From contig JAQFVV010000005.1 of NCBI GenBank assembly GCA_028023455.1, positions 12,710,001-12,774,000 of the forward strand: a DNA stretch of 64,000 nucleotides, read 5' to 3'. Position numbers and translations under genes: made by a program. Shown here piece by piece: positions 4,328 to 59,311 of the stretch. Numbering within the stretch: the stretch's first letter is position 1; every line of letters starts with the position of its first letter. This DNA is from Epiperipatus broadwayi (taxonomy: Eukaryota > Animalia > Onychophora). The notes beneath the pieces are model-generated. The model ran no database searches, was not told where the DNA came from, and saw only the letters and a program-made list of their open reading frames with translations.

Positions 4328-4804
4328 TGCTATGTCTTAGTTTAATTAAGTTTAACCAGTAAGATAGCAATAAATACAATTTATTCTCATTTAAAATTCT
4401 ATATATTTTAATAACTACTTTCAACAACATGGACATACAATTATAATATAAAATAAACACACAAGATTTCATTTAGTTTATTTACATACTAATATAAACA
4501 ATGTTCGCTATTTACCAGTCCTTATTTCATGCCTTGCCACAGTAGCCATTTTATCTACTGTTGTTTTCTTTGCTACAGATTTCATATTATCCTAAAGGCT
4601 GTGCACTGGTAACATCCTGGGAACTGAGAGCGATAAATCTCTGCCACCAGTTTTATACTATACCCATTTTATCGGGCATATATCCTGGAAACCATAATTG
4701 ACAGCAGTGCTCTCTTTATATTTGTGTGGAGAAGAATTTACATTATGAGGTAAGTACAATGCCACTATTTATCACAAATCAAACGTATATACATATATAT
4801 AGCA
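4328..4804 (-). repeat. 3' LTR of the Mag-like element
   Basis: Direct repeat of 12830-13300 (roughly 93% identical by eye); preceded on the minus strand by the polypurine tract AGAGTGGGGGAAGGAC. Confidence 0.95.
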
Positions 4805-4899
4805 GTCCTTCCCCCACTCTAGTAATACATATTGCATTAGTTTACTATATAGTCCTTAAATTTAACTGGTGGTTTCCGTATTCAGGAAATTTTAGGGCT

Positions 4900-7497
4900 A
4901 TCATTTCTATTTTCCCTTTGTACTCTTGGTGAGTCCAGTTCTTGCTCTGTCATTTCATCTTCAGTCAGTTCTGGCTCATCTTTCTTCCTATTTTCTTCTT
5001 TAGTCGGTCCCTTCATGATATGATTCATTTCCGGCCATATAGCTTCATCTTCCTTTGTTTTGTGATGGCAAAGGTGCTTTATATGTTTTCTCAACACTTT
5101 TCCACTTTTCTAACTCAATTAGACAAATTTGTTTATGCAATGACTGGTTTACAACTCCTGGATTCTGTTTGTGTTTTAAAATACCCAACACCCACACACA
5201 ATCACCTGGCAAAAACTTTTACCACTTTGGTATTATTATTATTATTTCTAGTGTTTCCAGGTAGTAGCTTTGTCAAATGGGTCCTGAATGTCCAACACAT
5301 CAATAGCTCCATCGGAGTTTTACCCATTGCAGTGTTTGGAGTAAAATGTTCAGCATACATAGCCTGTATCAAAGCATCTATGTTTTTGTTCTGCAATTTT
5401 TTTAATGGTTTTTTTTAAGTGTTGTACTCCTTGTTCCACTATTCCATTGCTTTCAGGATGGTATGGGAATGTAAGAAGGTGTTTAATTTCTCCTTTGTTT
5501 AGAAAAGCCATAAATTTTCTTGAAGTGAAACCTGAACGTTGTCTGTCGCAATAGTTTCTGGATAGCCATGTGTGGCAAATAGTTCATTTCACTCTTAGAA
5601 GGTACAGTCCACACTAGTATCCTTAACTATTCTAAACTCTGTCCGTAGAGAAAAAGCATCAATCACTAATAGCATCAGGTGTCCATCTCATCGGGCAATG
5701 TGATCCAGATGAATATGTGTCCATGGAGACTTAGGGGTTACCATGTTTCGTAATGCTTTAGTGGTAATCTGGCCACTTTGACAGTTACCTGCAATTTTTT
5801 ACTTGGATCTCTATTTCATTTGTTAAGTTTGGCCACCATACATATGACCATGTGAGGGCTTTCATTCATACCACTTGTGGGTGTCCTTGATGAAGTAGGT
5901 TTAGGACTTGAGGCCCACCTTCAATAGGGACTAATACTGTCATTATTTAAGATGCATCCATCACACACAAAGTTTATCCATAGCTATCCAGATAGCTTTG
6001 TTTAATTCACTAGGGCATTTCTTTGGCCACCCATTTCTGATCCATTTTATGAGCTGTACATAACCATTTTTTCTTATCCATTCCCTTATAGTCATATTAT
6101 TTATCTCATTTGACTGTAATGTGTCAATGTAGTTTATCTCTTTAGTTTGGAACACCCTTTCTGTGGTGTCTGGCAGCCTAGACAAAGCATCTGCGATTGT
6201 TTTCCAGATTTGTAGATTAGCTTATAGTCATATTGTGACATCAAGTTTGTCCATCGCACCATATGTTGTCTTGGGGGTTCTATAGGTTCATTTTCACTGT
6301 GAAAAATCTCTGTTAAGGGGTGATTATCTGTATAGATGTGAACTTATGGCCATACTCATATTGGTGGAATTTTTTTGCCGCAAAAGTCATGGCCAATGCT
6401 TCCTTGTCTATCTGGCTATAATTTTTTTCTGCAACTGTCAATACTCTTGACACGAATACTATTGGACATTCCCCTTCATAGCATGGGTGCAATATGATGC
6501 TACCACACCATACTCGGATGCATTGGTCATGATGTTCACTGCCCAGTCACTTCAGTAATGTACCAGTAGTGCTTCTGAAATTAATAAGTCTTTTGCAGTT
6601 TTAAAAGCATTCTCCTGTGCATCAGTCCAGATATATTGCTGTTTTTTTTTTACAACATGTTTTTGGGTTTCTTAGCATTTTTTATCACCTTTACTTTTTC
6701 AGGATCAGGTTTTCGACCATTTTCATTTATTATGTATACCAGGAACTTGATTTCTTGAGCTGACCAAATGCATTTATTAACATTAAGCTTTGCTTTGGCC
6801 TGAGCAAACCTGATCTACCAGTTTCTCAAGTTCTGCCTCAGTTGCATCAATAATTAAAATGTCATCTAAATAAGGTATAACTCCTTCCATAGACCTGAAT
6901 AGCATGTCCATTTTAGCCTGAAATATATTTGGAGCAATGGTTGTCCCATATGGCAATTTATTACATGTGTATAATCTCTTATGCATGGTCAGTGTAAGTA
7001 ATTTGGATGTACCTTTTGTTACTGGGATCTGGTGGAAAGCTGCTCTTAGATCAATTTTTGCAAAATACTTGCCTTTCTGTAATGATGCCAGTATTACTTT
7101 TATGCTTGGGACCGGGTATGCACCTTTGTTTATATATTTGTTGATCGTAACTCTATAATCCCCGCATAATCTTATATTACCATCTGGTTTTATTATGGTT
7201 ACAATAGGAGTATCCCAGGATGATTCTTCAGTGGGTCTTAATACTCCTTTTGATACTAAATCCATTATTGCCTTTTCTACTCTCTCCCTCATCGCAAATA
7301 GTACTTTTCTGGGCTTACATACAATGGCTTTGGCTTCTGGTACTAATTCTATGTCTACTGGTCTTGTTCTAAATTCTGCTGGGTCTGATGTAAACAGTTC
7401 CGGATATTTTTTTATATTTTTTTTTCTATACGGACAGTCTTTAGTACCCAATGGGGCAAACCAGTTTCTATCCAATAATGGACTGTCTTTATTAACT
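4900..7497 (-). pseudogene. Mag-like pol: RT, RNase H, integrase (disrupted)
   Basis: ORF 6783-7475 has RLCGDYR, KIDLRAAFHQI, KLPYG and YLDDILI; RNase H ..YSQIDKEALA..FHQY near 6400; integrase HPESNGIVEQ near 5440. Confidence 0.95.
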
Positions 7498-7501
7498 ATA
7501 T

Positions 7502-10500
7502 TGTAATGATATATAAATATGTCGTTATATTAATTTAAAATAAAAACTTAAAAGTTCGCAAATAAAAGTAAAAAACTAAACGCTAAAATTAAAATGTTTG
7601 TTAAACGTATATACATTCGCACAGATGCCAAACTTTAAAAATATTTTTTTTAAAAAAACAAATAAATAAGTATTTGAACGTACTTTTTTATATAAAAAAA
7701 AGTACAAGATTTAAAAATAAAAACAGGTATTAATTAATTCTTGTAATCTGTAAATGGAAATGATTGTTTATAAATTGTTTGAAAATCAAGCTAGCCTTGG
7801 GCTCTTGTATAATTAAAATGGTCTGATGAAAGATAGATAAGAAAATAAAGAGAAATTAGCTTGATCAATGGAAGCACTAAGCCTTGGCTCGGACCCTAAC
7901 GAAAGTGATGGATTAGTGACGTTTTATTGATTGAATCTGTGTGGATGATATAAAAAGGGAAATATAGTTTTTTCTGACAGTTCCAGCGTTTTGTGTTTGA
8001 GAGATGTGGTAGGACGCACATACCACACTCTCTATAAAAAAAATGAAAAGACTGTGATACCTTGAACCAGCTATTGCCATCTCCAGAACATTATCTTCCA
8101 ATGGAGGCATTGCGGGAATTAAAAGCAGAAACATGGACTCTTCTACCGTGAGCTATGAACTTTACAAAGTAACAACAAAAAAAAAGTAATTAAGAACTTT
8201 CGTCAATGTTTCTTTTTTAAAGATTCAGCTAATTTAAATTTTAAAATGAACTCTTATTTGATTTTCAAATTAATAATTGATTGTTTTATATAGTTAAGTT
8301 TTGCTAAAATCATTTCCATTTTATTATTATTATTTGTAGTAATATTTATTGTAGAAATTATTAAATGCATTACATTTAAGTTGGGTATAGACGTTGCAGA
8401 GATTCGTTAGCGGTTGATTATGTTGTGGTTTTCACAGTCGATTAGAATATATAAGTCAACAATGCCACTGCGGTGTCTTATGATGAACACCAAAGGGTCT
8501 CCTGTATTCCCTCAGCAATTGACGTTACCGATTGACTTTGTATTTTGATCGGTTGTGTTTAATTTGGAATGTTTTTGACTGTGGAATCTGTGCAGCCGAT
8601 CTATACTCGACATTATAAAACAAATTGTATAAAAATAATCTATGCGAATGTATTTAAATGTTAAATTTAAGTCGGGCGTGAATGGCTATATAGTTTTGTA
8701 AAGTTATATTAAGGGAGGGTAATCTTAGGTTATTCATTTCGTAGTTGAATTGGTTCAATGGATTGGATATATTTGTGTAATTGTAGATGTAGTATGAGAT
8801 CCGCTATGGGCAGGAGTATATATATATGCCACACACCTTCTGTTTGCCTATGGATGGGTTTTTAAGACGGCAAAGGACCGCATCCATTCCTATGGAGTTT
8901 TATGTTTATTGTTCTACTCGCCAACAGATGTAACATTCCTGTTGGTGGAGAGACAATGTCTTCTCTAATTCTACTTACTGATCAGATGTACATTTCTGAC
9001 AGTATAGTATTTTGTGTTGTCGTATTTTCATGCTACATTGAATACATAAATGTATCAGATAAATTGGCGCTGGTTTGATTGCGAAATTTGTTGCCTAAGT
9101 TTAAATCAGGGAAGAATATTTTCTTTTCAAATGCAGATCTATGTAGTCCATTCATACCCGACTCACTAAATAAATATTAAACTCATGGTTGTAATTTACT
9201 TAAATGTAAAACTAAAGATTAATAGAAAAATCTAAAATGTTGAATTTATTCCTCAAAATTTAAATGTTATTTTATATGTGCGTAAATAAATATTTTTATG
9301 TGTTAATTTCTGGCAGTGGCTTTTATTTATTTATATTTAAGATATAAATTAAGATATAGATTTTTATCTCTGTGTCTCTCCACTGAGCTGGTGACTTGGG
9401 CTAACGATCTGAATATTTAAATAAAGTGGAATCTTAACAGCACGTATCTGCCTACTCTATAAATTTTTCTAGGTTTAAATGCCTAGATGGTGCCTTGTAG
9501 AGCAGATATCATAGTTTGCAGTTAGATTCGATCTTCACTTTCATTTCGATGATTATAACTGGTGCCCAACGTGGGGCTCGAACCCACGACCCTGAGACTA
9601 AGAGTCTCATGCTCTACCAACTCGAAATGAAAGTGAAGATCGAATCTAACTGCAAACTACGATATCTGCTCTACAAGGCACCATCTATGCATTTACACCT
9701 AGAAAAATTTGTAGAGTAGGCAGATACGTGCTGTTAAGATTCCACTTTATTTAAATATTCAGATCGTTAGCCCAAGTCACCAGCTCAGTGGAGACGCAGA
9801 GATAAAAGTCTATATCTTAATTTATATCTTAAATATAAATAAATAAAAGCCACTGCCAGAAATTAACATATAAAAATATTTATTTACGCACATATAAAAT
9901 AACATTTAAATTTTGAAGAATAAATTCAACATTTTAGATTTTTCTATTAATCTTTAGTTTTACATTTAAGTAAATTACAACCATGAGTTTTAATATTTAT
10001 TTAGTGAGTCGAGTATGAACAGACTACATAGATCTGCATTTGAAAAGAAAATATTCTTCCCTGATTTAAACTTAGGCAACAAATTTCGCAATCAAACCGG
10101 CGCCAATCCATCTGATACATTTATGTATTCAATGTAGCATGAAAATACGACAACACAAAATACTATACTGTCAGGAATGTACATCTGATCAGTAAGTAGA
10201 ATTAGAGAAGACATTGTCTCTCCACCAACAGGAATGTTACATCTGTTGGCGAGTAGAACAATAAACATAAAACTCCATAGGAATGGACTGCGGTCCTTTG
10301 CCGTCTTACAAACCCATCCATAGGCAAACAGAAGGTGTGTGGTGTATATATATAATCCTGCCTGTAGCAGATCTCATACTACATCTACAATTACACAAAT
10401 ATATCCAATCCATTGAACCAATTCAACTATGAAATGAATAACCTAAGATTACCCTCCCTTAATATAACTTTACAAAACTATATAGCCATTCATGCCTGAC

Positions 10501-11672
10501 TTAAATTTAACATTTAAATACGTTCGCACAGATTATTTTTATACAATTTGTTTTATAATGTCGAGTATAGATCGGCTGCACAGATTCCACGGTCAAAAAC
10601 ATTCCAAATTAAACACAACCGATCAAAATACAAAGTCAATCGATAACGTCAATTGCTGAGGGAATACAGGAGACCCTTTGGTGTTCATCATAAGACACCG
10701 CAGTGGCATTGTTGACTTATATATTCTAATCGACTGTGAAAACCACAACATAATCAACCGCTAATGAATCTTGCAACGTCTATACCCAACTTAAATGTAA
10801 TGCATTTAATAATTTCTACAATAAATATTACTACAAATAATAATAATAAAATGGAAATGATTTTAGCAAAACTTAACTATATAAATTTAAACAATCAATT
10901 ATTAATTTGAAAATCAAATAAGAGTTCATTTTAAAATTTAAATTAGCTGAATCTTTAAAAAAAACATTGACAAAAGTTCTTAATTACTTTTTTTGTTGTT
11001 GTTGTTAATTTGTAAAGTTCATAGCTCACGGTAGAAGAGTCCAGGTTTCTGCTTTTAATTCCCGTGACGCCTCCATTGGAAGATAATGTTCTGGAGATGG
11101 CAATAGCTGGTTCAAGGTATCACAGTCTTTTCATTTTTTTTTTATAGAGAGTGTGGTATGTGCGTCCTACCACATCTCTCAAACACAAAACGCTGGAACT
11201 GTCAGAAAAAACTGTATTTCCCTTTTTATATTATCCACACGGATTCAATCAACAAAACGTCACTAATCCATCACTTTCATTAGGGTCCGAGCCAAGGCTT
11301 AGTGCTTCCATTGGTCAAGCTAATTTCTCTTTATTTTCTTATCTATCTTTCATCAGATCATTTTAATTATACAAGAGCCCAAGGCTAGCTTGCTTTTCAA
11401 ATAATTTATAAACAATCATTTCCATTTACAGATTACAAGAATTAATTAATACCTGTTTTTATTTTTAAATCTTGTACTTTTTTTTTATAAAAAAGTACGT
11501 TCAAATACTTATTTGTTTTTTTAAAAAAAATATTTTTAAAGTTTGGCATCTGTGCGAATGTATATACGTTAAACAAACATTTTAATTTTAGCATTTAGTT
11601 TTTTACTTTTATTTGCGAACTTTTAAGTTTTTATTTTAAATTAATGTAACGACATATTTATATATCGTTACA
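7502..11672. mobile_element. 4171-bp palindromic insertion: inverted dimer of a ~2-kb LTR with a tRNA-Lys copy at the apex
   Basis: Arms 7502-9549 and 9622-11672 are reverse complements (about 96% identical in a 300-bp sample); outer termini TGTAA...TTACA; 4-bp TSD ATAT (7498-7501 and 11673-11676); removal restores gypsy TTG TAT ATA GTT (LYIV). Confidence 0.93.
9560..9622 (-). tRNA. Reverse-transcribed fragment of mature tRNA-Lys(CTT), nt 14/15-76 including CCA (not a functional tRNA gene)
   Basis: Minus strand (A)GTTGGTAGAGCATGAGACTCTTAGTCTCAGGGTCGTGGGTTCGAGCCCCACGTTGGGCACCA versus the conserved metazoan Lys-CTT sequence: 3 mismatches (positions 17, 38, 73); 5' acceptor strand and 5' D-stem missing; CCA encoded. 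Confidence 0.92.
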
Positions 11673-11676
11673 ATAT

Positions 11677-12751
11677 ACAATGTCAAAGATTTATGTTTGG
11701 AGTTAAGTGTCACAGGCAGTTAATTTTCCTCAGATATCAACTTTGTTTCCATTTATATCTGTTACGATTGTATCAGCCTTATGTAGCTTTAATTTATATT
11801 TACTACCTCAAGTGATCTGTGTCCAATCCTTAAGTGATATCAATGACAATCCAGCTCCACTATCCACTTCCAATGTGATCACTTTTCCACAGACCTGCAA
11901 ATCCAGAAGAATGTGATCTGTTTTATTGTCACGTTTTGATAGTGTTAATGGTTGATTTTTTATATTCTACTCCTACCTGGGGTTTGGGGTCTACATTTTT
12001 CTCTGTGCCTCACAGTATTTATAATAATACGTGGCCACTAAATGTCCTCTTGTTACATTTTCTACATTTTATCCTTGTACCTACAGCTACTTTCTATATG
12101 ACCAGATTTTCCACAGCAAGTACAATTTTGTTTGGTGTGTCCGCTGAAAGATGTAGAGTCAAATTTTTTATTTTCTTTACTGAAAGCGATCTTGTCCGGT
12201 GATTTTGATCTGGTATATTCTGATGCGATGTTGAGCATGGCCTCTTGTGTGACACATTTATCAATCACTGTTTGTATGTTAATTCTGGATCACTCAATAA
12301 AACCTTCCTGAAATTTGCATCCATCATTCCATACAAGAACTGTTCCAACAATGCGTCATTTATCTCTCGACTGTATTCACATTCTTTGGCCAGTTTTAGC
12401 AATACAAGATCGTATCCACCTACTTCTCTTGCAGTGACTGCATTGTTTCTCAGCCTAAGGCATGCTATTTATTTAGATTGTTTCGATAGAAAGTATTCAT
12501 TCAACTTTTGTATAAATTCCTGATACGTGAAATCTTCAGGACACTTCGGATTGGTAATCCTGTTTGCTAATCGGTAATCCTATTTGCTAATTAGATCGTG
12601 TCTTTTCCTACTAAATATAATAGTGTGGAAATCATATCTATCATCCTCAATTTTGTTTATGAACATAATATTCTACTTGTTCAATATAACTTTTCCATAA
12701 GTCGACATCATTTATGTCGAATTCATGCATTATGGCGTTTATGGCCGCCAT
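11677..12751 (-). pseudogene. Mag-like gag and aspartic protease (disrupted)
   Basis: ATG at 12751 (MAAINAIMHEFDINDVDLWKSYIEQVEYY); zinc knuckle CTCCGKSGHIESSC; protease ITLEVDSGAGLSLIS; LYIV|NKDSP linker split exactly by the insertion. Confidence 0.92.
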
Positions 12752-12829
12752 ATTGTTTTTATACATAACATTTTTTATGAGTGCCTCACTTTAATTTTGG
12801 ACTTCTAATCCTGTACAGCTGTGCCACTC

Positions 12830-13300
12830 TGCTATGTATTAGGGTTTTATTAAGTTTAACCAGTAAGACAGCAATAAATACAATTTACTCTCATTTAGAA
12901 TTCTATATATTTTAATAACTGCTTTCAACAACATGGACATACAATTACAATATAAAATAAACACAAGATTTCATTTAGTTTATTTACATACTAATATAAA
13001 CAATGTTCGCTATTTATCAGTTCTTATTTCATGCCTTGCCACAGTAGCCATTTTATCTACTTTCCTTTGCTATGGATTTCATATATCCTAAAGGCCGTGC
13101 ACTTGTAACATCCCGGGAACTGAGAGCAGTAAATCTCTGCCACCAGTTTTATACTATATCTATTTTATCGGGCATATATCCTGGAAACCATAATTGACAG
13201 CAGTGCTCTCTTTATATTTGTGTGGCGAAGAATTTACATTACAAGGCAAGTACAATGTCACTATTTATCACAAAACAAATGTATATACATATATATAGCA
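12830..13300 (-). repeat. 5' LTR of the Mag-like element
   Basis: Direct repeat of 4328-4804; followed on the minus strand by GAG-TGGCACAGC, a TGG-initiated PBS-like site. Confidence 0.95.
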
Positions 13301-17484: not shown

Positions 17485-19410
17485 TATCATGTTTTAATAA
17501 GATGGCACAGAAGAGAAATTTTCTGGGAAGTTGGAGTAATACAAGAGTAAGGCTATTATTTAAAGGAAAAGGTAAGGATCTTAGAAAGTTAAACAATTAT
17601 AAACCGATAACGATAACATCAGTTTTATATAAAGTTTTTTCATTTATGGTGGCTGGAAGGGTTGCAAAAAGGATGGAAGAAAATAATATTAATGGGAGAA
17701 ATACAAAGAGGTTTTTGATCAGATAGGCATATAGGAGATAGTTTATTTGTAGTTACACAACTAATGGATATGAGTAGGAATACAGGTTGGTTTTTATAGA
17801 TATAGAGAAGGTGTAATATAGAATAAATAGAAATGGCTTATGGGTAAATTTAGTAAATTTGGGAATGAATGGAGCTTTAATGGATATTATTAAGAAATTA
17901 TATGAAAATAATTACTATGCGTATCAATTAGGGGATATAGAATCAGTTAAAGTTAAAAATGGGAGACTAAGGCAAGGATGCCCTATGTCACCTATTTTGT
18001 TTTTATTGTATTTGAGAGAAATGGATAGATCAATAGAAAGAATAGGAAGAGGGGTAGAGATACTATTAATAGGTGGCAAGGGAGTGTATACATTGTCGGG
18101 TCTGTTATTTGCAGATGATATCTTTTTGTGCATAAAAAGAAGATATGGAAGTTATGCTCAGGACATGCGTGAGGGTGGATAAAGAATGGGGGATTAAATT
18201 TAGTGAAGAAAAATCAAAAGTAATGATGATTAATACTGGGGAAAGAGAAGATAAAGAATTTTTATTGGGAGATATAAAGTTAAGTGTGGTGAATAGATAT
18301 AACTATTTGGGAATCATCTTAAGTAATTAGAGAAATTGCTTAGATGAATGGGAGAAAAATTGATAAATGAAGCAAAGAAAAGAAAGGAATTGATAAAGAA
18401 ATTGACTGTTTTCATATAATAAATATGATGTAGCTAGAATTGTATGGAAGGGAGAGGCAGTAGCAGGGTTAACATATGGTAGTGATGAGTTATGTGTTAG
18501 TAAAGGGGTATTAGATTACTTAGAAAAAGTACAAAGAGAAGTAGGAAGACATGCATTAGATGCAGATGTGTGGATGGGAAGGAGGCAGTTCAAAAGGAAA
18601 TGAGATGCTCAAGTTTTTATATAAGAGATGCAAAAAGCAAAATGAAAATGTTCGGTAGATTGCAGTTTATGGATAATAAAAGAATAGCCAAAATAGTATT
18701 TAATTGGGTTATGAGTAAAGGGCAGACAACAATATGGGTGAGAAAGGTAATGCACTATGCAGAAGATTTGGATAAAGAATTTATGTCAGTATACTTGTAC
18801 AAAAAATGGGATGATTGTGTTAGGAGAATTGTTGAGTGTTATAGTGGTAAGGAATGAGATAGAAGAATAGATGCATTAATAAAGAATGGAGTTGGAGAGA
18901 TGGAGAACTAGTATGGAGAGTAAAAAGAGTTTAAATATATATAGAATTAAACAGAATACTGGTTGTGAGTTAATTTATGATAATGCAATGAAAGTAGTTT
19001 ACTATTTAAGGCTCAAACAGGATTTTTAGCAACAAGGAAATATACACATAAATGGAAAAATGTGGGTGATTTAGTTTGCAAGTTATATAAGGAAGGCATA
19101 AAAATATTAGGCATCTATTAATTGAATGTAAATGCCTGAAAGCAGAAAGGGTACAAATAATGAAGTTATGGAAGAATAAATATAAACAAAGTGATTATAC
19201 AGAAAGTGGGTTATTGGGTTTGGAAAAGGATAGAGGGGATTTAGATATAAAGGTCATGGAGTTGACAAAGATTATGTTGTGGAAATGGGATGGAGCAAGA
19301 TATGAAAAAACGGTGAAAAGTGGAAAGAGAAGATAAAGTGGCTAACAGGTTTCTTGGCATAGTTGCTCCTGACTCTATATAAGGAGAACTCACAATACAT
19401 CAATCACATC
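17485..19410 (+). mobile_element. 5'-truncated decayed non-LTR retrotransposon (LINE family B: RT plus C-terminal Cys/His finger)
   Basis: RVRLLFKGKGKD..NYKPITITSVLYK, LRQGCPMSPILF, LLFADD, YNYLGII; C-terminal finger region; CATCA-type tail near 19395. Confidence 0.92.
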
Positions 19411-45644: not shown

Positions 45645-48028
45645 TTTTTTATTGGGGGATATAAAGTTAAGTGTGATGGATCATCATCATCATCATCAAC
45701 CATTATCAATCCACTGCAGGATGAAGGTCTCTCCAAGTTTAATCCATCTTCTCCGATCTTTAGCTTCTCTTCTCCACAACACCCCTGCACATTTTCTTAT
45801 TTCATCCATCCATCTCACATGTGGTCTCTTTCTGGGTCTTTTACAATCTCTTGGAATCCAGTTTAAAATTTCAATTGTCCATCTATTATCATCTCTTCTA
45901 GCAATATGTCCAGCCCAACTCCATTTCAATCTTTTAATTTTTTCAATAAGGTTAGTAACACCTGTTTGTTGTCTTACCCATACATTGCATTTTCGATCTC
46001 TTCTTGTTACTCCCAACATACATCTCTCCATACTCCTTTGAGTGGTCTGAAGTCTCTGTATTGCTCTTCTATTAAGTGTCCAAGTCTCAGATCCATAAGT
46101 AAAAACTGGTAAAACACATTTGTTAAAAACCATCCTTTTCAAACACATAGGCATATTTCCTTTTAGTATCAAGTTATTTCTACCAAAAGCACTCCAACCA
46201 AGTTTAATTCTATGATTAATTTCCTCCATTATGTTTCCATCTGTATTAATAATCTGACCAAGGTATTTGTAACTGTTAACTTCTAATTTTTCATAATCAA
46301 TCTTTATTTTCATATTTTGAGCAAATCAATTAAACATTACTTTAGTCTTTTTAACATTTATCTTTAGTCCTACTTTTCTACTTCCATCTGCTAACTCCTG
46401 CAACATTTCCTGCAGCTCTGAAGCATTATTTGCAAAAACAACTACATCATCTGTGAAATCTAAATGACTTAAATACTCTCCATTTACTTTCACTCCTTTA
46501 GTTTTCCATTTTAATCCACAAAATACTTCTTGCAGCACTGCTGTAAAGAGTTTTGGAGATATGGAGTCACCTTGTCTTACACCTTTCTCAATGTTGATTT
46601 TTCCAGTATCATTATGTAATCTAATTGTTGCTGTTGCATTTTTATAAATATTCTTTAAAATATGACAATATCCTGGATCTATACCTTGATGATCCAATGC
46701 TTTAATCACTGAAGAAATGTGTATAGAATCGAATGCCTTTTCATAATCTACAAATCCAAAACATAATGACAACTCATATTCGTTTGTCCTTTCTATGACT
46801 TCTCTCAATACCTGGATATGATCTATTGTACTAAAACCACTTTTAAATCCAGCTTGTTCTCTTGGTTGGTTGGTGGATAGATATAGTTATTTGGAAATCA
46901 TCTTAAATAATCAGGAAAATTGCTTGGTTGAATGGGAGAAAAAATTGGTAAATGAAGCAAAGAAAAGAAAGGGTTTAGTAAAGAAATTAACAGTGTTTTC
47001 ATATAATAAATATGATGTAGCTAGAATTGTATGGAAGGGAGTTGTAGTAGCAGGGTTAACATATGGTAATTATGTCTTATGTGTTAGTAAAAGGGTATTA
47101 GATTACTCAGAGAAAGTACAAAGAGAAATAGGAAGACATGCATTAGATGCAGAGGTATGGACACCAAAGGAGGCAATTCAATGAGAAATGGGATGGTCAC
47201 GTTTTTATGAGAGATGCAAAAAGTAAAATGAAAATTTTTGGTAGGTTGCAGTTTATGGATAATAAAAGAATAGCCAAAATAGTATTTAATTGGGTTATGA
47301 GTAAAGGGCAGGCAACAAGATGGGTGAGAAAGGTAATGCAGTATGCAAAGGATTTGGATAAAGAATTTATATCAGTATATTTGTATAAAAGGTGGGATGA
47401 TTGTGTTAGGAGGATTGTTGAGTGTTATAGTGGGAAGGAATGGGATAAAAGAATAGATGCATTAATAAAGAATAGGGAGTTGGAGAGATGGAGAACTAGT
47501 ATGGAGAGTAAAAAGAGTTTAAATATGTATAGAAGTAAACGGAACATTGAGTGCAAGTGAATTTATGATAATAGTAAGGAAAGTAGTTTATTGTTTAAGG
47601 CTCGAATGGGATCTTTAGCAACAAGAGATTATACATGTAAATGGGAAAATATGGGTGATTTAGTCTGAAAATTGTGTAAGGAAGATATAGAAAATATTGG
47701 GCATCTGTTGATTGAATGTAAATGCTTGAAAGCAGAAAGGGTACAAATAATGAAGTTATGGGAGAATAAATATGAACAAAGTGATTATACAGAAAGTGGG
47801 TTATTGGTTTTTATGCTGGGTTTGGGAAAAAATAAGGGAGATTTAGATATAAAGGCCATAGAATTGACAAAGATTATGTTGTGGAAATGGGATGGAGCAG
47901 ATTATGGGAAAGCTTAGTGTGGGGAATGGAAGTGGAAGGTAAAGTGGCTAACAGGTTTCTTTGGGCAGAGTTGCCGAGAGATTCCTGACTCCGTTTAATG
48001 AAAAGTCATGGTACATCACATCACATCA
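45645..48028 (+). mobile_element. 5'-truncated LINE family B copy, split by an RTE insertion
   Basis: 45645-45680 plus 46871-48028 are colinear with 18255-19400; C-terminal CKEDIENIGHLLIEC; (CATCA)n tail at ~48013-48028. Confidence 0.92.
45681..46870 (-). mobile_element. 5'-truncated RTE-clade LINE (RT and 3' end) nested in LINE B
   Basis: QPREQAGF..GFSTIDHI, FVDYEKAFDSI, KGVRQGDSISPKLF, YKYLGQ, KWSWAGHIARR; (TGA)n tail; flanked by TGATGGA/TGGTGGA probable TSD. Confidence 0.95.
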
Positions 48029-49693: not shown

Positions 49694-49802
49694 GTCAAGC
49701 ATTGGTGGTCGAGAGGTCAGTGATGGCTGCTTTACATGCAGTTGTCCTGGGGTTAGCGGGTTCACGTCCCGGCTGATGCGATGACACATGAGAAAAAAAA
49801 AA
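49694..49802 (+). mobile_element. tRNA-derived SINE-like head with A-tail
   Basis: A-box-like TGGTCGAGAGG, B-box-like GGTTCACGTCC, ends in an oligo-A run; no tRNA cloverleaf. Confidence 0.5.
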
Positions 49803-50900: not shown

Positions 50901-51524
50901 ATAATTAATAAAACAAGTCATAAATTTCGTAACTTGCTTTTAAGCTTGCATTTAAACTATCACTAGATGGAGCTTACCAATAGCTCTAATCAAGCTTTAT
51001 TTTATAAGTGCCAAAAGAGAAAGAATTCAAAATCTCTATCGGAAAGTCCCTATCTCCAGACCAATTGGTTTTGAGCTTATGGCTCATCTCAGTGGAGCGC
51101 AGGGACTCTAGAAACTAGATCTAAAATACTAACTCAAAAGTCAGCACTTATAAAGGATGTTTCTGTCAATTTGAAAGCCTGAACATTTCAGACATGTGAA
51201 TGTCTTCAAATCCAACTTTACAAACCAGATTAAAAAAAAAGTTCAGACTTTCAAATTGATAGAAACATGTTTTATAAGTGTTGACTTTTGAGTTAGTACT
51301 TTAGATCTAATTTCTAGAGTTCTAGCGCTCCACTGAGGTGAGCCATAAGCTCAAAACCAATTGATCTGGAGATAGGGACTTTCCGATAGAGATTTAGAAT
51401 TTTTTCTCTTTCGGCACTTATAAAATAAAGCTTGATTAGAGCTATTGGTAAGCTCCATCTAGTGATCATTTAAATGCAAGCTTAAAAGCAAGTTACAAAA
51501 TTTATGACTTGTTTTATTAATTAT
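50901..51524. mobile_element. Foldback/MITE element (~620 bp, ~290-bp arms)
   Basis: ataattaataaaacaagtcataaattt...tcaatttgaaag.ctgaac reverse-complemented at 51240-51524; ~50-bp spacer. Confidence 0.85.
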
Positions 51525-58645: not shown

Positions 58646-59311
58646 ATAAACCAATTATAATGAGATATTATTTTATATAGCGCTATGTTTTAATACTGTA
58701 ATAGTAATATTAGCGATTAAGCCAATGCACATGCGCTTTAAAGATAAATTATAAATGAATACTCTCACTTTTTTCCAGACACAAGATATAGTATTTTAGA
58801 AAGAATGGAATGAATCCACCCATTCTTTCAACCCAAACATTTATGTATGGGCAAATCTTAAGCGTATGGAAATGAGAGTGTGAAGATGTTAAGCAATCAC
58901 TTTAAATTACATTTGTTATGTTTGAACAAATGACGTCTGTAAAATCTTTACAATTTACAACCCGTCATTCTTTAGTTGAAATTAAACATATTTGTAATGA
59001 GATATTATTTTATATAGCACTATGTTTTAATACTGTAATAGTGATATTAGCAATTAAGGCAATATAAAGATTTCACAGGCATCATTCGTTCAAACATAAT
59101 AAATGTAATTTAAAATGATTGCTTAACACCTTCACGCTCTCATTTCCATATGCTTAAGATTTGCCCATACATAAATGTTTGGGTCGAAAGAATAGGTGGA
59201 TTCATTCCATTCTTTCTAAAATACTATATCTTGTGTCTGGAAAAAAGTGAGAGTATTCATTTATAATTTATCTTTAAAGCGCACGTGCATTGGCTTAATA
59301 AACCAATTATA
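58646..59311. repeat. Composite A-B-spacer-A-B(inverted) repeat bounded by 14-bp direct repeats
   Basis: A 58658-58726 = 58995-59063; B 58716-58950 inverted at 59065-59299; ATAAACCAATTATA at 58646-58659 and 59298-59311. Confidence 0.85.

Follow-up and report, generated by a model that had tools for sequence, protein, structure and literature searches.

A 64,000-nt stretch of the genome of the onychophoran Epiperipatus broadwayi (GenBank assembly GCA_028023455.1, contig JAQFVV010000005.1, positions 12,710,001 to 12,774,000 of the forward strand; hereafter the window, to which all coordinates refer) contains a 4171-bp palindrome at 7502-11672, in which two copies of a long terminal repeat (LTR) lie in inverted orientation around an antisense copy of tRNA-Lys(CUU). 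The palindrome is probably a dead-end by-product of LTR-retrotransposon reverse transcription that was inserted into the germline by integrase. Read along the plus strand, it begins with the three LTR regions (unique 3' region, U3; repeated region, R; unique 5' region, U5), continues with the dinucleotide AC and an antisense stretch of tRNA-Lys(CUU) that starts at the CCA end and reaches nt 14, and then passes, with a 1-nt overlap, into the LTR complement, which is entered 8-9 nt inside U5 and extends as far as the first U3 base. Each outer end is therefore a U3 terminus, and the presence of U3 at both ends together with a 4-bp target-site duplication (TSD) indicates insertion by integrase. 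The parts of the insertion are as follows.

7498-7501, no strand: left copy of the TSD, ATAT, read directly and the same as at 11673-11676.
7502-9557, plus strand: complete LTR (U3-R-U5) of 2056 nt, TGTAATGAT...ATGATTATA, with U3 outward and U5 towards the centre.
9558-9559, plus strand: spacer AC of 2 nt between the LTR and the primer-binding sequence, read directly.
9560-9621, minus strand: copy of tRNA-Lys(CUU), nt 15-76 (nt 14-76 if T9622 is counted), from Rfam, the predicted fold and comparison with a human tRNA.
9622-11672, minus strand: second LTR copy, inverted, 2051 nt, without the last 8 nt of U5 and with its U3 end (..TTACA) outward.
11673-11676, no strand: right copy of the TSD, ATAT, read directly.

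In the window, the repeat finder returned an inverted chain of collinear segments, 7497-9549 and 9622-11677, with an innermost gap of 72 nt; because ATAT is self-complementary, this inverted repeat extends through the TSD. The outer ends of the palindrome are 5'-TGTAA (TG at 7502-7503) and TTACA-3' (CA at 11671-11672). A first-pass annotation, made from the letters of the window, had described inverted arms of ~2 kb, a 72-nt apex and TGTAA..TTACA ends, and the repeat finder, BLAST and base-by-base reading bear out all of these. Its span of 7498-11676 takes in both copies of the ATAT duplication, which is real, and the element proper, with its ends read base by base, is 7502-11672. The same reading agrees with its statement that the left arm is complete, ending in TTATA and followed by AC and the primer-binding site (PBS), whereas the right arm, which starts at 9622, is 8 nt short of the end of the LTR unit.

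The LTR termini, TGTAATGAT and ATGATTATA, match at 7 of 9 positions as a terminal inverted repeat (TIR), and the chance that random 4-nt flanks would be identical at the local base composition is ~0.7% (probability ~0.007). No open reading frame (ORF) inside the palindrome is longer than 73 aa and none has a Pfam domain, in line with the earlier statement that it holds no gag, pol or transposase. Neither a polypurine tract nor gag, pol or any internal region was found between the two inverted LTRs, and no tandem sub-repeats were found in the arms. The TG/CA ends, the 4-bp TSD and the adjacent tRNA-Lys PBS are consistent with the arm being an LTR of the Ty3/gypsy type. Within its first 28 nt (7502-7529; 11645-11672), the LTR also holds a local inverted repeat of 8 nt (TGTAACGA ... 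TCGTTACA in the right-arm copy), so that the U3 terminus recurs, inverted, 20 nt inside the LTR.

The 72 nt between the arms (9550-9621) are made up of the last 8 nt of the LTR, the AC spacer, and an antisense mature tRNA-Lys(CUU) with its CCA included. On the minus strand, 9560-9622 reads as the 3' strand of the acceptor stem with CCA, a T arm (GTGGG/TTCGAGC/CCCAC), a 5-nt variable loop, an anticodon arm with the loop CTCTTAG and the lysine anticodon CTT, and the 3' strand of the D stem with a D loop carrying A14, G18, G19, and A21. In the predicted fold of the isolated centre RNA, the anticodon and T hairpins form. The Rfam tRNA model RF00005 matches 9571-9622 on the minus strand with 22.2 bits (E 0.019), a score that falls under the gathering threshold only because the copy lacks the 13 nt at the tRNA 5' end and with them the acceptor and D stems; the Rfam scan of the whole window at the gathering threshold gave no match.

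Aligned without gaps to nt 14-76 of human mature tRNA-Lys(CUU), which is given as two halves in PMC12140204 and is not the tRNA of the species itself, the centre is identical at 58 of 63 positions. The five differences fall at 17 (in the D loop), 29, 41, 38, and 73, and those at 29:41 make up a compensatory change of an anticodon-stem pair, from G-C in the human tRNA to A-U. The CCA end of eukaryotic tRNAs is added post-transcriptionally. Because CCA is present and the stem change is compensatory, the template was probably the organism's own mature tRNA, as opposed to a tRNA gene or a sequence that resembles a tRNA by chance. From its sequence, the centre would be explicable only by reverse transcription of a primer tRNA.

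The PBS itself, TGGTGCCCAACGTGGGGC (18 nt, plus strand, 9560-9577), has its sole match in the window at this place, where none is expected by chance, and is 1 base off the tRNA-Lys1,2 PBS given in PMC8775094. The first-pass annotation had proposed a tRNA-Lys PBS; the tRNA is indeed tRNA-Lys, but the centre is a copy of 62-63 nt of it, reaching 44-45 nt past the 18-nt site. At the junction, T9622 fits two readings, as the complement of A14 and as a base of U5, and so makes the 1-nt overlap; the 13 nt that lie past it match tRNA nt 1-13 at 2 of 13 positions. A58 and A37 of the tRNA were copied without misincorporation, and the error-free copy of A58 hints that this base may have been unmethylated in the primer tRNA.

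The two arms differ by 49 substitutions (41 transitions and 8 transversions) and 10 indels of 1-5 nt in a global alignment of ~2040 aligned positions, which corresponds to a Kimura two-parameter (K2P) distance of 0.0245 (2.4% substitutions), and the differences are evenly distributed along the arm. When one arm was compared with the window by BLAST, the other was returned as a single alignment of 2065 columns with 96.5% identity. These differences amount to the ordinary decay, since insertion, of two originally identical copies, and each arm has thus decayed by about 1.2%. Because the arms differ by 2.4% and 10 small indels, the palindrome is old and not an assembly artefact. Nearly half of the transitions between the arms (20 of 41) lie at CpG sites, and the observed/expected CpG ratio is 0.90 in the arms against 0.26 in the whole window, which has 28% G+C. 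As a separate observation, the CpG ratios and the CpG transitions suggest that repeats in this very AT-rich genome are methylated at CpG in the germline.

A pathway by which such a molecule may form can be assembled from reactions described for reverse transcription. Plus-strand strong-stop DNA is primed at the polypurine tract, copies U3-R-U5 and 18 nt of the attached tRNA, and halts at the 1-methyladenosine at tRNA position 58, m1A58 (PMC13191261). If the primer tRNA is unmodified, reverse transcriptase (RT) runs on towards the tRNA 5' end (PMC13191261; PMC11912779). The second strand transfer is completed only by products that end in the T loop (PMC13191261), and when the tRNA is copied in full, reverse transcription is aborted, because elongation after the transfer is blocked by the linked tRNA copy (PMC11912779). 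Another known dead end is self-priming by strong-stop DNA (PMC6088434).

The proposed origin of the palindrome can be potentially described as follows. Plus-strand DNA starting from the polypurine tract would have copied the minus-strand LTR, passed A58, and read the T arm, the anticodon arm, and the D loop of a primer tRNA that was probably hypomodified, leaving an over-extended strong-stop DNA that would be incapable of the second strand transfer. Its 3' end may then have jumped, with near-zero homology, to a plus-sense LTR strand, and run-off at the 5' end of that template would have recreated the exact U3 terminus. To judge from the order of the segments, only one kind of template could account for the second half: a plus-sense LTR strand that began, at its 5' end, with the U3 terminus set by the polypurine tract. 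Such a strand would be the strong-stop DNA itself (fold-back) or a sister, for instance another strong-stop DNA that had been displaced from the template they shared. That the switch came after nt 14 may be owed to the loss of the tRNA's 5' remnant after nicking by RNase H, and not to a block by modified bases.

Were two strong-stop DNAs to prime each other's 3' ends, with one ending at tRNA nt 14 and the other paused 8-9 nt short of the U5 end, the direct result would be a U3/U3 dimer, blunt and double-stranded throughout; a pure fold-back would yield a hairpin that would still require second-strand synthesis. Since both outer ends must be strong-stop 5' run-offs, mutual priming is the simplest route to the blunt duplex. 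Integrase would then have synapsed the two identical U3 ends and inserted them in concert with the usual 4-bp stagger. The first-pass annotation had also suggested aberrant plus-strand strong-stop DNA with U3 at both ends and insertion by integrase, a mechanism that is well supported and is strengthened by the tRNA read-through; of the two templates it named, the strong-stop strand itself and a sister strand, either may have been used.

Several points weigh against this origin. The step that gives a duplex with two U3 ends is conjecture, and the switch point has an overlap of 1 nt only and falls a few nucleotides short of the positions at which copying of a tRNA usually comes to a hard stop. 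The sole surviving U5 terminus (9550-9557) reads ..TTATA, where symmetry with U3 predicts ..TTACA; the TA end may be either a later transition or the mark of a source copy whose U5 was poor as an integrase substrate, which would favour U3/U3 products. The duplicated target is a self-complementary ATAT in AT-rich DNA, so that the argument from the duplication is somewhat weakened, and the five differences from the human tRNA are not assignable to the species as against decay. No proviral or solo copy of the LTR was retrieved from the window, from metagenome, viral or prokaryotic contigs, or by protein look-ups, and because of this the arm is called an LTR on its anatomy alone. An integrated inverted LTR dimer with a tRNA centre was not found in the full-text literature, where older subscription papers are thinly covered, which makes this weak evidence of absence.

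Four other explanations were weighed against an aberrant strong-stop product inserted by integrase. An over-extended strong-stop DNA could have primed itself through a hairpin of the tRNA D arm, giving a near-perfect palindrome (LTR-AC-tRNA copy / tRNA-GT-LTR') that later lost ~65 bp at its centre, namely the second tRNA copy, the spacer, and 8 nt of U5. The junction falls exactly at the boundary of D loop and D stem (nt 13/14), where a D-arm snap-back would turn, and has the 1-nt overlap that deletion junctions have; 3'-hairpin self-priming is documented for strong-stop DNA (PMC6088434), and central deletions are the usual fate of perfect palindromes. Such a course is nevertheless unlikely, as it takes two events where one suffices, the second tRNA copy left no trace, and the D-stem copy (nt 10-13) needed for the priming hairpin is absent, as the mismatch to the tRNA just past the junction (2/13) makes plain.

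It is more doubtful still that host end-joining brought together, tail to tail at U5 and before integration, two LTR-length cDNA fragments of which one carried the tRNA read-through. End-joining junctions typically show such a 1-nt overlap and such a small terminal loss (8 nt of U5, from one side only), and the tRNA copy and the U3 ends would be accounted for as they are by strand switching. Free double-stranded LTR-only fragments with exact U3 ends would themselves need run-off copying of strong-stop DNA, however, which is an extra step that saves none, and the junction is without filler DNA.

A rearrangement after integration is very improbable. It would have started from a single aberrant LTR-tRNA unit or a normal element, later duplicated in inverse orientation by template switching or the repair of a hairpin-capped break, or from two head-to-head insertions followed by a deletion. 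Fold-back replication errors do make inverted duplications with 1-nt junctions, and an integrase that prefers ATAT targets could give independent insertions with matching flanks. Against this, both outer ends are exact U3 termini and a chromosomal fold-back would not stop at the first base of an element; the host sequence resumes beyond either end with no more than 4 bp duplicated, and the centre contains no host DNA. Head-to-head insertion with deletion needs several precise coincidences and would still require the tRNA read-through. An origin outside the retroelements, as a DNA transposon or foldback element with 2-kb TIRs or as a chimera of assembly or long reads, might be suggested by two other foldback or miniature inverted-repeat transposable element (MITE)-like palindromes in the window and by the assembly palindromes that missed-adapter chimeras can produce, but is extremely improbable given a centre that is a mature tRNA with CCA 2 nt from the end of the unit, TG..CA ends with a 4-bp duplication, arms without sub-repeats, no transposase found, and, between the arms, 49 substitutions at a 5:1 transition bias with 10 indels, which no artefact would produce.

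The structure also differs from the known forms of LTR elements. A provirus, a large retrotransposon derivative (LARD) and a terminal-repeat retrotransposon in miniature (TRIM) were rejected, as the LTRs are inverted and not direct, and there is neither an internal region nor a polypurine tract. It is not a solo LTR, since there are two inverted copies and a tRNA-derived centre in place of one copy, nor a 2-LTR circle junction, since U5 (with the tRNA copy) meets inverted U5 and the U3 ends point outward; the first-pass annotation had set aside these two and a normal provirus, rightly in each case. A foldback or MITE-type DNA transposon does not fit, because sub-repeats are lacking, the centre is a reverse-transcribed mature tRNA with CCA, and the ends are TG/CA with a 4-bp TSD. 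A DIRS-like retroelement was rejected on the absence of coding capacity and the presence of a target duplication, and an autointegration inversion circle because such circles keep internal sequence and complete U5 ends.

The closest known molecule is the over-extended plus-strand strong-stop DNA of retroviruses, which arises when the m1A58 stop fails and likewise consists of U3-R-U5, the PBS, and further tRNA complement. These products cannot finish reverse transcription (PMC13191261; PMC11912779). Retroviral read-through products are unintegrated, or occur as circle junctions with direct LTRs; in the onychophoran element the copy runs to nt 14, an inverted LTR follows, and the whole is integrated in the germline with a TSD. 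Colicelli and Goff (J Virol 1986) reportedly described a cloned circle of a murine retrovirus in which tRNA sequence lay between the LTRs. In self-primed strong-stop DNA, the 3' end folds back and extends itself to a dead-end hairpin, a case known for minus-strand strong-stop DNA (R-U5 only), in vitro and with a defined 3' hairpin primer (PMC6088434); here, by comparison, the arms are whole LTRs, the switch has a 1-nt overlap, and the product is double-stranded and integrated. The palindrome would thus work like an over-extended strong-stop product combined with a snap-back or strand-switch reaction, each of which is known from retrovirology.

Three further systems share part of its anatomy. 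A solo LTR also has an LTR without internal genes and a short TSD, but it is one copy left by LTR-LTR recombination of a provirus, and recombination between direct repeats could not produce inverted copies with a tRNA centre. Autointegration inversion circles share the two inverted LTRs of one cDNA (PMC7197481); however, their U5 ends are joined to an internal target, and they have no tRNA read-through, free U3 ends, or chromosomal duplication. Loci of the Mu killer type share the inverted duplication of a terminal or regulatory region of a transposon and the potential for a hairpin or double-stranded RNA (dsRNA) against their own family. Mu killer is derived from a DNA transposon by chromosomal rearrangement, whereas here the inverted repeat would stem from the element's own replication error.

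The palindrome lies within another retroelement.

4328-13300, minus strand: host LTR retrotransposon, Ty3/gypsy-like and degraded, recognised from its LTRs, TSD and pieces of RT and RNase H.

The host LTRs (4328-4804 and 12830-13300; 471-477 nt) have the termini TGCTAT...ATAGCA and a 5-bp GCCAT duplication. Between them, RVT_1 (4e-17) and RT_RNaseH matches stand in Ty3/gypsy order, together with a zinc-knuckle gag remnant and a D-S-G protease motif for which the RVP match is weak. All host coding pieces are fragmentary, with several in-frame stops and at least one frameshift in addition to the palindrome insertion, and the longest ORF is 230 aa. Without the palindrome the host element is only ~4.8 kb long, so that internal deletions are probable as well. 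The palindrome interrupts the protease-coding stretch, and the residues on both sides add up to an uninterrupted domain of ~100 residues. Because protease coding resumes on both sides, there was no sizeable loss of host sequence at the site and a single simple insertion is indicated. The first-pass annotation had placed the TSD inside an LYIV codon run; the flank in fact reads D-I-V-Y, in the minus-strand protease stretch of the host, and the host gene is already out of frame near the insertion site. The host LTR pair has a K2P distance of 0.058, more than twice the 0.0245 of the palindrome arms, and from this lower value the palindrome is the nested, younger insertion, as expected.

A diverged fragment related to the LTR occurs at 85-606 in the window and is 82% and 72% identical to LTR positions 1006-1169 and 1760-2006, respectively. 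Its best-kept block is a TATAAAT-containing stretch 50-100 nt from the LTR 3' end. On this resemblance, the fragment shows the palindrome arm to be a member of a repeat family. The similarity stops 50 nt before the LTR 3' end, and TATAAAT with the ~45 nt downstream of it is possibly a core promoter and the start of R. Family-level DNA patterns drawn from the conserved R-proximal block gave no match in metagenome, viral or prokaryotic genome contigs. Exact look-up of ten window ORFs, those of the arm and apex included, and a word-indexed protein search with the 73-aa arm ORF gave no match either. Two HMMER matches to a 58-aa arm ORF were rejected as chance, being weak matches of 11-14 residues multiplied by internal repeats of the targets.

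Other repeats and a tRNA-like sequence were observed elsewhere in the window. The segment at 50901-51524 is a 624-bp MITE-like foldback, non-coding and unrelated in sequence to the LTR palindrome, with 288-nt arms that are 93% complementary and a 48-nt spacer. A second foldback at 58716-59299 has arms of 235 nt (95%) and a spacer of 114 nt, and ~65 nt adjoining it on the left are repeated directly in its spacer (58660-58725 / 58998-59063), which suggests duplication of flank and arm. RT ORFs of the long interspersed nuclear element (LINE) type lie at 45696-46808 (minus strand), 18407-19309, and 46994-47911; their best database relative is 63% identical, and the relatives include a psyllid protein. 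Sequence adjacent to the LINE ORFs is directly repeated ~28.6 kb away with 85-94% identity. ARAGORN called an 82-nt tRNA-Val(TAC) at 49699-49780; the Rfam gathering-threshold scan has no tRNA there, and the call may be false or may mark a pseudogene.

As for the further fate of the palindrome, a transcript started from either inward-facing LTR would consist of R-U5, the PBS, and antisense LTR. Because such a transcript has neither a polypurine tract nor a sense-oriented 3' R for the first strand transfer, it is not copyable by the normal LTR pathway, and any further examples would therefore be independent accidents and not the outcome of amplification. A self-propagating palindromic class is thus mechanistically unlikely, and the same lack of a polypurine tract and a sense 3' R tells against the non-autonomous class of U3-U3 palindromic elements that had been envisaged in the first-pass annotation. 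It is conceivable, if improbable, that integrase-inserted U3/U3 inverted LTR dimers with a tRNA-copy centre form a recurrent, uncatalogued class, born when the primer tRNA escapes methylation of A58, each yielding hairpin RNA or dsRNA against its own family. Because both LTR promoters would face inward across a 2-kb inverted repeat, every such insertion would be a ready source of this RNA, and, if this were true, the replication error of a retrotransposon would create its own silencing locus. In structure, the palindrome is compatible with a hairpin-RNA or 'killer' locus, with its 2-kb inverted repeat and both LTRs inward, and would give antisense LTR RNA and potentially a 2-kb hairpin or dsRNA. 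By analogy with Mu killer, hairpins formed by LTRs have been put forward, and looked for, as a trigger of retrotransposon silencing (PMC11624286).

The palindrome is best read as a rare, old, single integrated fossil of a reverse-transcription accident, and not as a new kind of mobile element. It is a natural record, fixed in the germline, of plus-strand synthesis that read through the primer tRNA, a step otherwise usually seen only in vitro, and, with 62-63 nt of the primer preserved, the isodecoder (tRNA-Lys CUU) is identified far better than by an 18-nt PBS. It further implies that concerted insertion by integrase with two U3 ends is possible in vivo, and shows how a replication error can lead directly to a long inverted repeat of LTRs. 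Annotation pipelines would probably mistake such a structure for a foldback or TIR element, or list it as a pair of unrelated solo LTRs; a search for an LTR followed by more than 18 nt of tRNA copy and then by an inverted LTR could show how frequent these accidents are. Its main value for work on retroelements is therefore that of a natural record and a search template.

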